Shown here piece after piece: positions 1 through 5,467 of a DNA stretch of 64,000 nucleotides. Made by a program: the position numbers and the translations under genes. The notes below the pieces were generated by a model. The model searched no databases, had not been told where the DNA came from, and was given only the letters and a program-made list of their open reading frames with translations. Each line of letters opens with the position of its first letter. Within the stretch, counting starts at the first letter, position 1. Source of the stretch: Prasinococcaceae sp. CCMP 1430 (Eukaryota > Plantae > Prasinodermophyta); contig RQSC01000907.1 in the NCBI GenBank assembly GCA_013416795.1, forward strand, positions 69,144 to 133,143, read 5' to 3'.

Positions 1-208
1 CTGTGCTGTCGAGCCTGTTGAGCAAGTGCTCGCGCAATAAGTAACTTGTCGTTGCGGTTCTCAGGTCGATGACTTGCACGAGAGAGCGCTACGCGCGGAG
101 CACGCATGCCGACGATGAACTGTGCAGGCCGTCGGAAAGGATCCCAAGGACCTTGCGCGTCGGCCAGCAGGTGAGGTCGATTGGCTTGTCCCGCTTGGTG
201 AAGAGGTG
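1..208 (-). mobile_element. Fragment of non-LTR retrotransposon, C-terminal part of the restriction-like endonuclease (RLE) region
   Basis: The reverse complement of 91..208 aligns without gaps to 762..879 (18 mismatches in 118 nt by manual count). It reads HLFTKRDKPIDLTCWPTRKVLGILSDGLHSSSSACVLRA* versus HLFTNRVTQADPSRWPTGKVFRVLADGLHSSSSACVLRA in the plus-strand copy. Confidence 0.7.
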
Positions 209-332
209 CTGCAAAGGGTGCGATTACAGTGCAAGGAGACGCAAGCGCAAGGTTGCGTAGCGCGCGTGTGTAAGCCACCCCCTCGCTTGGCAGTTCTTCA
301 CCCCTCGTATTGTAATCGCACCCTTTGCAGCA
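207..332. repeat. 126-bp segment bounded by perfect 22-bp inverted repeats (TGCTGCAAAGGGTGCGATTACA ... TGTAATCGCACCCTTTGCAGCA)
   Basis: 207..228 is the exact reverse complement of 311..332. The same 22-mer recurs at 1015..1036, and 207..270 matches the reverse complement of 973..1036 at 60/64 nt. Confidence 0.9.
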
Positions 333-1036
333 CTTCACCCGCCCCGACACAGCTGGCGCAGCCCTGTACGAGGCCCTGCAATCCATGCATCAAGAACGAG
401 CTCCTCACCCTCTCGTCGCACCGGCTACCACGTGCACACCAACGGCCCCAGCTCCACCAACTCGTTCGAGTACTCGTTCGGTACTGACGAAAATGGCCAG
501 CCCACTGACCTGCGCTCGGACCTAGTCATCACCGACACCGACACAGGCTACAGACACTGCCTCGACGTCACCTTCACGGATCCGTCAGCCAAGGTCAACA
601 TGGCAGGCGCGAACCCGTCCACGGCGGCAGGCCTGGAGCACCTCTACAAGGTCCACGTCCAGCGCTACGCGAAGATCTGCGAGCACCACCGCATCCAGTT
701 CCACACGCTAGCGTTCGACACCCTGGGCCGTGCACACAGGTCCACCAGGGGGGACATCCGCCACCTCTTCACCAACCGGGTCACGCAGGCGGACCCAAGC
801 CGCTGGCCGACGGGCAAGGTCTTTCGGGTCCTTGCCGACGGCCTGCACAGTTCATCGTCGGCATGCGTTCTCCGCGCGTGCGGCGTGCACACACACGACC
901 GCCCCAGGCGCCGCTCTCGCGGCAGCGCTGCGGGCGGATAGCTAGCTTTCACTCATGCCCTTACTTCTTAGACACACGCGCGCTACGCAACCTCGCGCTT
1001 GCGTCTTCTCGTACTGTAATCGCACCCTTTGCAGCA
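333..1036 (+). mobile_element. 5'-truncated non-LTR retrotransposon (CRE/R2-like): RLE endonuclease region plus putative 3' UTR
   Basis: ORF 432..941 has the RLE pattern R-x-D (DLRSDLVI), LDVT (HCLDVTFTDP), K...Y (YKVHVQRYAKIC) and F-x-x-LAFDTLG. It is preceded in another frame by TRPDTAGAALYEALQSMH, which resembles the RHD..v...L segment that follows the CCHC knuckle, so a frameshift is implied. The segment ends in TGTAA-N15-CA at 1015..1036. Confidence 0.7.
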
Positions 1037-1324
1037 GATCCGCGGGACCTTGTCGCCATCGCAGACCGTCTCGACATTGTCGATGATGGAGAGGATCATG
1101 GCTTCGGGGTCCAGCTTGCGGATCTCGGTGACGTACTGCATCAGTGGCTCGCGAGAGACCAGGCAGTGCAGGAGGGACCCGAAGGCGCATCCTTGGGTGG
1201 CGCCGCGAGACGAGATGACCCGTTCGTTGCTGGCGCTGCCAGCGACGAAGAACGACGTCGGGCCGCCGTACAGGAGGCGCACGTAAGGCAAGAGCTCCGG
1301 CATGTCACGCTTGACCGCAGGCAA
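1037..1324 (-). mobile_element. Degenerate reverse transcriptase fragment of a non-LTR retrotransposon
   Basis: MPELLPYVRLLYG...SSRGATQGCAFGSLLHCL...ILSIIDN matches the non-LTR RT motifs GxxQG(D)xxxPxLF and a decayed YxDD. It is truncated at both ends and abuts the 22-nt terminus at 1036. Confidence 0.7.
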
Positions 1325-1431
1325 AGGGCGTGCAAAGCGATTGCCATGGCTGTTCGGCCTTGTGGCTGTGGCAGCTCGCTCGATGCCACTTTGGACCTAC
1401 GTACGCACACGCACAACGCAATGATCACTTA

Positions 1432-4400
1432 CTACATGGCCATTGCGCCATCTTCCACTTCGCAGAGCCAGCTCGAGCCGAGCTCCTGGGCGAGCACATC
1501 GCGGGACTTAGCGTTCCCGCTGCTCGCCGCATGCAGCGCCCTGAGCAGCAGGGGCTTGAGCGCCGGATCCGAGAAGAAGGGAAACGGGACGTTGCATAGC
1601 TTGGTGAGGATGGTGGGCGCCCGTCCCCACGTGAGCACCGCCTGGTTCTTAGGCGAGCCGCGTGCGAAGAAGGAAATGAGCACAATGACCTCCTCGAGGA
1701 GCTCCGCGACAATGCCGCCCTGCCGCATGCCGGGCGCCGCGGGACGCGACGTCCACGCGGCCGTACAGAAGCTCAGTAGGAAGCTCACCAGGTGGAAGAG
1801 CTCCATGCGCATGTCAGTCGAGCCTAGCAGCTGCTGCACCATGCAGTGGTCCCTCCGAGCGGCAGAGTTCAAGATGCGCATCACGGTTGTGGCAACTGGT
1901 ACAAAATTCGGAGGTAGCTTGTCCGCGTCAGCCGCAGCTGCGCCGAGCCCGGGAGCGGCGTGCAGAAGCGTTGCAGTGAGCAGGCTAGGCAGCCCACCGA
2001 GGTGCGTGTCGCCCAGCGCGCGCAGCACCGGTGCGGTGGAGCTCGTGTCGAGATGCGCATTTTCTTTGGATGCGCGGCACGGGGCCGAGCCGCACAGCGT
2101 CCCCAGCAGTCGCAAGCCCCACTCGATCGCCGAGGGAACCGGAGAGCCCTCCTCCTGCGGTCGTTCCCACACGGCGAAAAGTTCACGCAGGCGATGGACG
2201 ATGCCAAAGGACACCACGTAGTTCACCAGTGAGTTATGAACGGCGCGCGCGGGGTCCTGGCCCTCCTCGTCGGAGGACCTGCTCGACGCCTCTGCTGCGC
2301 GCGGCGCGCGAGCGAGAACGCTGTCCGATAGAGCGAGGAGGGCCTCGAGGAGTGTAGGATCTGCGTTGTTGTTGACCTTCTGCGTCGTTGGACACTCGGG
2401 CCCAGACGTTGAGCTCGACGACCTCGCGGTTGACGATGAGCGCGCGCGAATAGCCACCGGGTCGCTTCTCCTCGGCCTACACTCGACGTATGCGGCGCCA
2501 CCCTCGCACGTCGCGTCCAGTTCTGACGCCAACAAAGGTGCGATCGGAAGAAAGATGTGCTTCGCGCGGACATACGCAGCATTCTCTGGTATGCCTAAGC
2601 AGAGCACCGCTGCCTCAGCTGTGATCGCTGCTGCTCCAGCAGACCCGTCGGAGTCATCCAGGTCGCGAGCGCGCGCCCCACTCGCGGGCGCAACGGCAGC
2701 GAGAGCTGTGAATGCGGCCTCGAGGGCTCCGCATCGCCGGACAAGGTGAAGCTCATTCTCTGCGGCAGTCCTTAGCGCCGCGATGCGTCCGGGAGGCAAT
2801 TTGGATTCGCTCGACGAGCCTACCCTCTGGAACGACAGCGCTGCTGGCAGGCATCGTACGAGCTCCCTCGCGGCAGCCGTCACGGCGAAATAGTTTGCCT
2901 GCGTGGCGTTGGAGCATGTCGCCGCCGCGCGCTGCAACTCCGCCGCCGCCTTCTGGAGGCGCACCTTTGCGCCGCCGGCCGCCGCTGCGGCTGCATCTGC
3001 TGCGGGTGGTTCTACCCACGCGCATGGGATTTTCACCATGCGTTGCCTGATGCGCTTCGCCTTCTTTTTGCGCTCCTCCCTGAGACGTTTCGCAGCAGCG
3101 TCGGTGTCCTCCTCCGCCGGCTGTGCCTCGAGCGAGCACGGCGCATCGTCGAAGGGCCCCACCGCGCCACCTGTCGGCGTCGTGGGCGCCTGGCCCGACT
3201 CGGGGGTGCATGCCTCGGCGTGCTGGTGGATGAGTTCGAGGTTCTTGCGCCGCCTCCGTGTGGCCTCGGCACGCCGCGCCGCGAGCATTCGGTCGATGCG
3301 CGCCATCTCGTCCGCCGGACGGGCGGCCTGCGCAGCAGCTACTCGCCGCTCCTTAATCACTCTCACCTCCGCCGCCAGTGCAAGCATTGCACGATGCTCG
3401 TCCGCGGCCTTGGCCGCAGCCTCCTCCTTCTTTGCTTTCTTGGCTGCAAGCTTCGCCTTGCGCCCCTCTTCGAGCGCCTGCCTCTTTATCGCAGCAGCCT
3501 CAATCCTTTGGCGTGCCTCCTCCTCCCTGGATCGCCTAGCTTCCTCGCGTCTGGCTTCCGCCTTTTCCAGTTTCTGCTGGAGTGACAAACGCTTGCTGTC
3601 CACCTCCAAGGACCGCATGGAAACCACCTCGCTCACCTTCTTGGAAACCTCCCCGGCCTTCCTAGCAAGCTCCGCCAGATGCTGCTCGTGGCGCCTCTTG
3701 GCTGACGACTCCCGATGGTCAAGCTGTGCCTTGAGCCTGGATCGACGCACCTCCTGCCATTTCTCCGCCTGCCTGTGCCTGTCCGCCAATTTCGCCAGCC
3801 GAGCGCGGCGCTCGAGGTCGAGACGCTCGCGTGCCTCGCTCGCGCGTGCCTGCTTCGCAGCCGCCGCAGCTGCAGCTTCTGTCGGTGACTTCTTCTTTCG
3901 CTCGGGGCTCATCAGCTTGTCGTGGAGCGATTTGACACGCGACAAGCCCGAGGGCGTGGTCACGGCACTATCGAAGGCCACTCTGGGCGTGACGACCTCG
4001 CTCGGCTGTCTCACCCGCTTCTTCAAGGCATCGCCTGGGCGCTCGATGGGTGCCGGGGTGAGCCGTCTCTCAGGCGATGCGCCCCCACTGCTCTTCGCGC
4101 TGCCGTTGCCTGAGCTGCTGCCAGGTGAAGAGCCACTGGAGCCCCCGCGCACAATCTTGCCCTGCTCCTTGGGAAATATGGTCCCCCAGTTTTTCTTCAC
4201 CTTCCACGCCGCCGCGCCCAAGTCGGACGCGCTCTTTCCACATCCGTGCGTGTCGTCTGGGCCGACTGCGCCCGGCGTGTTCGATGAGTTCGTGCGATTC
4301 TTGAGCGCTTCGTCCCCGCCGGGCACGCACGCCTCGGAGTGAGCGGCGCTGGCAACTGCCTTTGTCAGGCCAGACCTGCCCGGCGTGGGGGTGTCGCCGT

Positions 4401-5467
4401 CCGGGAGGCTTCCAAGCTCGAGTTTTCTGTTTGTCTTGCGGGCTGATGGTGGGTGCGCCACGCGCTTCGTGGGTGTCGGAGTCAGCATCGCGTCCTCGGC
4501 CTGTGTTTGCTGCCTGCTGCCGTCAGCCTTTTCTGATGGCGCAGCAGCGCTCCCTGCAACAAGAGGTGCGGAGCCGACGCTCCCTGCCTCGCCGCAAGCC
4601 ACAACGTTGCGCCCGAAGAGTGGTGCTACCTTCGGCGCAGCGAGGGATGCCAGTATCTCTCCCGGGTTGAAATCTCCGCTCGCCAGCCCTTCCCTGGGCA
4701 GCGCTGCCAGCGCGCTGGCCATGACAAGCTCCGTCGACCTTCGCGGCCTGACTTCCCACGCGACGCTCGCACCGGTCTCAGTCGCTTTCTCCTGCTGCTC
4801 GTGGCGACGCATAAGCCCGCGGAAATCGTCCGCCGCCTCGGACAGCAGCGTTGTCACACGCCGCAGCTTCTCCTGCGAACTGTCCACCTCTGCATGCGAC
4901 GCGCATTGATGCGTCAGTCAGCACGAGCGCTCCACTGATCAGTTCCTGCGCGCGTTGCTGCGCAGGGCGCGGCGCGTGCACATCGCACGCACCGCACAGG
5001 CAGTAGAGCTCGTCCACTGAGCGGTTGAGCGACTCGAGCAGATAGCGGAACAGCTGCCGCCGGAACGAGTCGGGGTTGCCACCCTCGCAGCCAGGCGTCG
5101 ACGGCGTCGGCGGCGTCAACGCGCCGTCCACGCGCCCGGCTGCAGAACGCACGGACGGCGGTTCGCCTGCCGCAGCATCAATACCGGCGGGACGGAGACG
5201 CTCGCCTGCGCCAGCCCGCGCGACACCGGGCGCGCCCTCCAGCTCCTCCTCCTCCCCCTCCCCCTCCCCCTCCTCCTCCTCCTGCTGCTGCTGCTGCCGC
5301 TGCTGCAACTGCCGCCGCTGTTGAAGCTGCTGCGGCTGCTGCCGCTGGTGCTGTTCCGCGCTGCGCGGGTCAGGCGCGGGTTTGTGCGCAGACCTCGGCG
5401 AGGCCGCCGCTCTACCCCCTTCGTCTTCGTCGTCGTCGCTCCACATCCCCAGGGACGACGAGGCCAT
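1432..5467 (-). CDS. SCAPER: SCAPER-like protein (S-phase cyclin A-associated protein in the ER)
   Basis: Model: exons 5467..4993 and 4889..1432, with intron 4992..4890 (GT...CAG and a CTGAC branch point). SCAPER motifs are present: N-terminal LLESLNRSVDELYCLCE...DFRGL, SVAWEV, LHDKLMSPERKK, a long coiled coil, KKKAKRIRQRM, and C-terminal GRAPTILTKLCNVPFPFFSDP. The N-terminus has polyQ and polyE tracts. Confidence 0.85.

Follow-up and report, generated by a model that had tools for sequence, protein, structure and literature searches.

A nest of truncated pieces of a probable R2-like retroelement family between two convergent genes of Prasinococcaceae sp. CCMP 1430

How pieces of one retroelement came to be joined, in both orientations, in a narrow gap between two genes is the question raised by the first bases of a 64,000-nucleotide stretch of Prasinococcaceae sp. 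CCMP 1430 DNA (contig RQSC01000907.1, positions 69,144 to 133,143; here called the window, the coordinates of which are used throughout). The initial annotation had read the cluster as fragments of a retroelement of the non-LTR kind (without long terminal repeats) that encodes a restriction-like endonuclease (RLE), joined at one shared terminus, and had supposed that it might be the edge of a self-inserting array that marks a chromosomal landmark. The fragments and their common 3' terminus are upheld by an R2-like structural model and a shared 3' untranslated region (UTR), but the array edge and the landmark are not upheld. The cluster spans positions 91 to 1347, about 1.26 kb, and takes up the interval that separates two convergent host genes, whose stop codons are at 38-40 and 1432-1434. 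We conclude, with a probability of roughly 65%, that it is a nest of at least five truncated pieces of one R2-like non-LTR family, placed in or beside earlier copies of the same family. The nest is small and local and is not a chromosome-scale array.

What joins the pieces is the 3' end of the element. The 22-mer TGTAATCGCACCCTTTGCAGCA is found exactly at 207-228 on the minus strand and at 311-332 and 1015-1036 on the plus strand, as was first annotated, and there were no matches in 100 shuffled sequences. It forms the final 22 nucleotides of the element's 3' UTR and ends in GCAGCA. In piece B (411-941, plus strand), the reading frame stops at 939-941 and is followed by a 95-nucleotide UTR (942-1036, ending ...CCCTTTGCAGCA) that terminates in the 22-mer at 1015-1036. 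A scan of metagenomes with a 20-mer of the tail returned one 1-kb JGI contig, L001, and it carries the same UTR and tail. Because the same UTR stretch, 43 to 95 nucleotides of it after the RLE stop, runs into the 22-mer in piece B, in piece C, and in L001, the 22-mer must mark where the element ends at its 3' side and is no separate unit. RNA folding of the 3' UTR gave no significant fold (z = -0.86).

The pieces themselves were delimited by self-BLAST and repeat finding. Piece B encodes the RLE core from RRTGYHV to the stop and scores 265.9 bits against the RLE profile (nodes 12-188); it is without the zinc knuckle and the RHN helix, its firm RLE homology starts at about 411, and it is 94% identical in amino acids to a metagenomic relative, P0001. 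Piece A (91-208, minus strand) is a C-terminal RLE fragment (HLFTKRDK...ACVLRA*) truncated at both ends, with 37.5 bits to the RLE profile. It is 84.7% identical to 762-879 of the plus strand over 118 nucleotides, in agreement with the 85% first estimated, and thus represents a second subfamily; it is also 80% identical in amino acids to P0005, and the two share their end point. Piece C (207-271, minus strand) consists of the last 65 nucleotides of the 3' UTR, including the 22-mer at 207-228, and is 94% identical to 972-1036 (plus strand) over its 65 nucleotides. Piece D (304-332, plus strand) is an extreme 5' truncation of 29 nucleotides, with 7 nucleotides of UTR and the 22-mer, and is 97% identical to 1008-1036 (plus strand). 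The copies that share the 3' end (B, C, D, and L001) thus range from 29 to more than 600 nucleotides, show variable 5' truncation, and have no LTRs. At least two subfamilies are represented among the pieces in the window, and both orientations occur.

Whether a fourth tail lies in the cluster, as had been suspected at about 1320-1345 of the minus strand, depends on how it is sought. Plain local alignment of 1310-1360 (minus strand) to the 22-mer was not significant, being no better than at about 25 other places in the window. A compound pattern, AATCGC followed after 0 to 12 nucleotides by CCCTTTGC, however, was found in the window only in the three tails and at 1321-1342 (minus strand), and it was never found in shuffled sequences. 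The 8-mer CCCTTTGC alone occurs four times in the 64 kb, and all four occurrences are inside the cluster. Moreover, the fourth site sits exactly at the 5' end of the reverse transcriptase (RT) homology of piece E (AVKRDM). We therefore take 1321-1347 on the minus strand (TGGCAATCGCtttgcacgCCCTTTGC, piece F) to be a real tail that is degenerate or variant. All four 3' termini of the window thus lie within 1.14 kb, with none in the remaining 62 kb; were four sites placed at random over 64 kb, the probability of their all landing in so short a span would be about 2e-5.

The inverted tails of C and D (203-236 and 303-336) form a 34-nucleotide inverted repeat that is 88% complementary around a 66-nucleotide spacer. 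The repeat is probably a by-product of the nest, but if transcribed it could give a hairpin RNA directed against the element's own 3' end. An Rfam match to MIR1858, at 28 bits where the gathering score is 137, merely reflects these inverted tails and was rejected.

What the coding pieces encode was approached through their relatives. An exhaustive HMMER search with piece B against 1.8 billion representative proteins returned only 25 matches, all of them short fragments save one weak match to a repetitive protein of 1164 amino acids, and the assemblies behind the ten relatives that were looked up are those of ENA, JGI, or Logan. P0001, P0010, and P0022, which are fuller, share the motif order C..H...C, RHN, RSDL, LDVT, YK.HV..Y, and LGR.H. 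In an AlphaFold 2 model of P0001, the core reached a predicted local distance difference test (pLDDT) score of 70 to 85 (mean of the model, 55.6), and a Foldseek search with that model placed R2 retrotransposon proteins in the top five positions (E values of 2.6e-3 to 1.8e-2). VIA-align superimposed the model on residues 872-1107 of R2, which comprise the zinc knuckle and the endonuclease, with a Z score of 7.7 over 147 to 154 residues; archaeal Hjc resolvases came next, with a Z score of 7.0. The R2 endonuclease is itself in the Hjc-resolvase neighborhood and is described by RH, PD..D, and K..KY motifs, and the RHN, RSD, LDV, and helix-2 lysine of the relatives correspond to the motifs given for R2, namely, the RHN helix, the acidic residues on strands 2 and 3, and the lysine in helix 2 (PMC4838377). 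Searching PDB chains by sequence with E, the RLE profile, and P0037 gave no hits, and none to any R2 chain. Support for the RLE is only moderate because the Z score is below 8 and no hit was obtained at the sequence level. With that moderate confidence, pieces A and B are predicted to derive from the part of the element that encodes a zinc knuckle and a PD-(D/E)XK RLE of the R2 type.

Piece E (1037-1320, minus strand) runs from AVKRDM to GDKVP(RI), contains motif B (RGATQGCAFGSLL), scores 181.9 bits against P0037, and is 94 to 97% identical to the metagenome fragments P0034 and P0035. When P0037 and P0038 were read by eye, RT motifs A (HTADAANAF), B (RGATQGCAFGSLL), C (IIDD), and D (GLDSDKAVTF) were recognized at R2-like spacing. 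Independent support came only from a protein-language-model atlas search, in which 25 of the 30 named neighbors carry RVT_1. Piece E is thus likely, though not proven, to be a fragment of a reverse transcriptase. Motif C is intact (IIDD) in P0035 and P0037 and is mutated to IIDN in E (1052-1063, minus strand) and in P0034. Because the same mutation is found in the window and in P0034, the RT of the E copy is probably dead and the locus is probably one that is common to natural populations. In relatives (L001 711-790 and the C-terminal part of P0038), we note, the RT motifs are followed by a stretch, AAKVVALAKSQQRKLRMHVHPDR, that contains a J-domain-like HPD.

How the pieces meet one another bears on how they arrived. 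Piece D is flanked exactly by two identical copies of the 8-bp sequence CTTCACCC (296-303 and 333-340), a target-site duplication absent from the initial annotation. Because the duplication flanks it exactly, D is a separate nick-and-insert event, and at least one separate insertion hit the patch. On the minus strand, the tail of C passes directly into the RLE codons of A, with an overlap of 1 to 2 nucleotides (CA), 3 nucleotides 5' of CTCTTCACC, which encodes HLFT. The tail of B, which ends at 1036, abuts the antisense RT of E just after GDKVP, and at the other end of E the short tail F precedes the 5'-truncated RT. It had been claimed that each tail is followed directly by internal coding sequence; this is so for the tail at 207, which is followed by RLE, and for that ending at 1036, which is followed by antisense RT, but not for the tail at 311-332, where about 70 nucleotides (341-410) with only weak similarity to the family precede the firm RLE at about 411.

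Those 70 nucleotides belong to segment U (272-303 and 341-410, plus strand), which D interrupts and which is in frame with B. U possibly encodes an RT stretch, PPPPLSTILHPPSY. When D and one copy of the repeat are removed, PPPRLAVLHPPRH aligns to residues 133-146 of P0038, and 2 of 2,000 shuffled sequences scored as well. This weakly suggests that U is derived from the family. An RT-like reading of U on the minus strand (GS..ERV..QGCA) and an IKNEL match to P0035 were not significant, conflicted with the firm RLE reading, and were rejected.

Related joints are found in metagenomes. L001 reads, in order, the RLE end, the UTR, the tail, a second tail of 21 nucleotides, sense RT from (D)SDKVVTF, and later an abrupt RLE beginning VVITDT. 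P0039 has an unrelated N-terminal part followed by a 22-nucleotide tail (CNRTLCS) and then RT truncated before motif A. P0036, the only protein found by a search with the antisense reading of UTR and tail, has an antisense tail that meets the RT at a point about 13 codons past the joint in the window, and P0035 breaks between the two. With L001 added, breakpoints have thus arisen independently four times (in the window, P0035, P0036, and L001) in the stretch of about 25 codons that follows motif C. P0008 breaks right after the HLFT codons, the same codons that begin 3 nucleotides beyond the joint of C with A. Finally, P0034 reproduces the joint of E with the tail at this very locus, and because it comes from separate metagenome assemblies, that joint is unlikely to be an assembly artifact. 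Searches of prokaryote genomes and IMG/VR with P0001 and P0038 found no relatives.

Abrupt switches from the RT-side region into the RLE core were seen in L001 (950-960), in the window at about 400-411, where U joins B at RRTGY, and in P0009. The RLE part begins at almost the same point in L001 (VVITDT) and P0009 (ITDTDTG), and the copies have the look of internal-deletion variants that recur, or of switching at preferred points.

How could such a nest have formed? We propose an element ordered as RT, zinc knuckle, PD-(D/E)XK RLE, and 95-nucleotide 3' UTR, which would integrate by target-primed reverse transcription and would do so in or beside its own copies far more often than chance allows. 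First, an old minus-strand copy, running from F and E through to A, would have entered the intergenic gap, and F at its 5' joint would probably record a jump in which the RT, on reaching the end of one element RNA, moved to the 3' end of a second. Second, a break inside the old copy would have primed reverse transcription outward from both DNA ends, giving C on the minus strand and U-B on the plus strand, arranged head to head so that both tails point outward; the same step would have deleted the old copy between GDKVP of the RT and HLFT of the RLE. Third, a later and abortive insertion of 29 nucleotides, D, would have hit U at CTTCACCC. Self-insertion, as first suggested, is favored by the four termini within 1.14 kb, by the duplication around D, and by the joints in metagenomes; that the target of D was itself family sequence is only weakly indicated.

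Why the family would land on itself may lie in its nuclease, which could prefer short sites in the element's own sequence, one being CTTCACC in the HLFT codons and another lying in the 25 codons that follow RT motif C. CTTCACC occurs only 15 times in 128 kb (both strands) and yet is at two, perhaps three, independent joints, and we regard it as a lead to a candidate nick-site preference. A 9-mer near two joints, GACAAGGTC, was also considered as a target motif and rejected, as it may simply stem from the two DKV stretches in the RT (GDKVP and SDKVV). The stronger claim, that the family is site-specific for itself, with an RLE that prefers ^CTTCACC(C)^ in the HLFT codons and the 25 codons that follow RT motif C such that each copy is the landing pad of the next, is doubtful.

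Several observations weigh against the proposed nest of self-inserted copies. The DNA of joints comes from one window and one 1-kb metagenome contig (L001), and the other joints were read from protein fragments. Pfam returned no relevant family for B, E, P0001, P0035, P0037 to P0039, or P0018 and did not call the RT, and the AlphaFold 2 model of the RT-fragment family (pLDDT of 34) was too poor for a structure search. RT and RLE are adjacent only in mosaic loci (the window, L001, P0009, and P0011) and never in one intact open reading frame (ORF). Within the nest, piece A is without a proper 3' end, and phmmer gave U only 5.7 bits against P0038. CTTCACC is missing from the joint of B with E and from the joints of L001, and therefore no single target site explains everything. 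The preference, moreover, may be for transposable element (TE) DNA generally: P0018 and P0039 are chimeric ORFs in which pieces of the family follow an unrelated N-terminal part, and that of P0018 has a knuckle (C-x2-C-x4-H-x4-C) that resembles the gag of an LTR element, on which Pfam is silent. These chimeras suggest that the family may also land in other transposons. Finally, the history that we infer is the one with the fewest events that could be fitted, about three, and an inversion in place or a single event with many jumps fits parts of it equally well.

Of the other explanations, the one that survives best is a single complex integration without homing, in which the RT made serial template jumps between element RNAs at a host intergenic site. 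Four times, independently, a short piece of tail immediately adjoins a truncated copy on its 5' side, namely, F before E, 21 nucleotides in L001, 22 nucleotides in P0039, and the 65 nucleotides of C before A, and such short upstream "copies" would not be expected if the tails were mere targets. Moreover, serial template jumping is documented for R2-type RTs, mainly in vitro (PMC8857657, PMC8594491), and the concatemers so formed resemble the nest in that a tail piece meets a truncated copy at its 5' end, the two overlapping by 0 to 2 nucleotides. The clean 8-bp duplication around D, however, marks a separate nick and insertion, jumps from RNA to RNA do not yield both orientations, and an antisense tail recurs independently in the same RT stretch in P0036. 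As the opposite orientations and the duplication are left unexplained, a single event is unlikely.

Alternatively, insertion may have been random, with only those copies that fell into dead TE DNA escaping selection, and the nest may have grown passively. Local gene density is high, and the two convergent genes would stand only about 140 bp apart without the nest. The published genome of Prasinoderma coloniale has 25.3 Mb, 6.51% repeats, and 69.8% G+C (PMC7455551); the G+C content of the window is 67%. Survivorship would also accommodate P0018 and P0039, in which the family is joined to sequence resembling the gag of another TE. A patch of about 1 kb is tiny, however, against about 1.6 Mb of repeat DNA, and yet it was hit at least two more times by a family so rare that 25 relatives were found among 1.8 billion proteins. 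Moreover, it is repeatedly in the same few short stretches of the element that joints are found. Survivorship is plausible as a contributor but alone is too weak, and as a full account it is somewhat less likely still than a single integration.

An inversion after insertion is improbable. Here, positions 272-1036 would have been inverted by two breaks in a minus-strand chain (F and E, then U, then the B tail, C, and A), and B would never have been a separate insertion. E ends at GDKVP, and U, if its weak match holds, runs the other way and starts only about 45 codons beyond that point of the RT, an arrangement that an inversion with a small loss at the breakpoint would produce. The assignment of U is weak, however, and a break would be needed exactly at the last base of the B tail. 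In addition, P0036 independently carries an antisense tail at the same RT region, as insertion would produce.

That the cluster is the edge of a large self-targeting array at a centromere or subtelomere is very improbable. The idea drew on Zepp and ZeppL, self-nesting long interspersed nuclear elements (LINEs) that mark centromeres in other green algae (PMC3446292, PMC8226300). The nest is, however, closed on both sides. To the left, a host gene outside the element ends within positions 1-40 (plus strand; translation CAVEPVEQVLAQ*, stop TAA at 38-40), and it is followed by a spacer (41-90) of host intergenic or 3' UTR sequence that has no match to the RLE profile and no similarity to the family when compared with the end of the B ORF and its UTR by Smith-Waterman alignment (354 of 1,000 shuffled sequences scored as well). 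To the right, a host ORF of 1151 amino acids (1432-4887, minus strand; stop at 1432-1434) marks the limit. No similarity to the family was found in the window beyond position 1500, and at neither the DNA nor the protein level does the 64 kb of gene-dense sequence contain anything else like its first 1450 bases or any further copy of the family. Nothing supports a role of the 1.26-kb nest at a centromere or telomere. A supposed extra RLE fragment at 2-49 (minus strand), from a weak blastx match to P0020 and P0025, was dropped for want of profile signal.

Equally hard to credit is that the 22-mer is an independent unit, such as the end of a miniature inverted-repeat transposable element (the case that the initial annotation named as refuting) or a host target site, or that the cluster is misassembled: a 20-mer of the tail is indeed found in two IMG/VR phage contigs (L002 4194-4216 and L003 3796-3818; 20 exact bases, 22/23), but these are related contigs of 43 to 44% G+C that match by chance within a conserved coding region of one homologous gene, the 22-mer is continuous with the UTR as described above, and P0034 carries the joint of E with the tail in separate assemblies. 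As the phage matches show, very large collections can contain a chance match even to a 20-mer.

The right host ORF has no Pfam family and is rich in coiled-coil-like stretches of Ala, Glu, Arg, and Lys. Its stop lies about 85 nucleotides from the nest, and its 3' UTR may extend into retroelement sequence.

How the family of the nest relates to known retroelements depends on which feature is compared. Like R2 and the other RLE-bearing LINEs (R4/Dong, NeSL, CRE, HERO, and Utopia), it would have a C-terminal knuckle-like segment and a PD-(D/E)XK nuclease, and it shares with the R2 supergroup a defined common 3' UTR, 5' truncation, and, on one copy, a short target-site duplication. It differs from R2 in having no sequence-level hit to R2 chains and in the J-like HPD stretch that follows the RT motifs in relatives. 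Nor is the locus the 28S ribosomal DNA (rDNA) site of R2 proper, as positions 1-2000 have no ribosomal RNA match and genes for proteins lie on both sides. The usual targets of RLE elements are repeated sequences (PMC4640811). Here, in contrast, the recurrent target is the element's own sequence, and no rDNA, small nuclear RNA (snRNA), spliced-leader, transfer RNA, or microsatellite sequence was found at the locus; the target is not Utopia-like. The CRE clade, to which the initial annotation had likened the element, comprises CRE1/2, SLACS, and CZAR and is specific for spliced-leader RNA genes, whereas the one structural match obtained here is to R2.

Zepp of Chlorella and Coccomyxa and ZeppL of Chlamydomonas are closer in habit. 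They too insert into their own copies, as the family does here on a small scale, and Zepp clusters consist mostly of 3' ends owing to frequent 5' truncation (PMC8226300, citing Higashiyama 1997; PMC3446292). In Coccomyxa, the clusters measure 1.5 to 42 kb, occur strictly once per chromosome, and lie at putative centromeres (PMC3446292), and ZeppL clusters are likewise centromeric (PMC8226300). Zepp and ZeppL are, however, L1-clade LINEs (PMC8226300, PMC3446292), as the initial annotation correctly held in stating that they are not of the RLE type. The family here differs in having an RLE-fold nuclease, although a second nuclease may lie at its 5' end, and in forming a 1.26-kb nest between genes. 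The Dualen/RandI LINEs of Chlamydomonas have an RLE as here, and Dualen has an apurinic/apyrimidinic endonuclease as well. Dualen/RandI is reportedly a green-algal LINE group carrying an RLE, as Kojima and Fujiwara are said to have described in 2005. The group is also cited in PMC8226300.

LINEs of the RLE type are known as specialists for multicopy host targets, among them rDNA, snRNA genes, spliced-leader genes, and microsatellites. The locus itself is a small nest of ordinary size with no sign of a chromosomal role. If the family does prefer its own copies, however, it would represent one more way in which an element can find sites where it does no harm although genes are dense, and the host belongs to the deepest-branching phylum of green plants. 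Self-specificity, if true, would be a safe-haven strategy, reached separately from that of the L1-type Zepp, of a LINE of the RLE type whose algal host genome is very compact. Moreover, the short abortive and chimeric joints would, if so, offer a natural system in which to study how R2-like integration starts and finishes.

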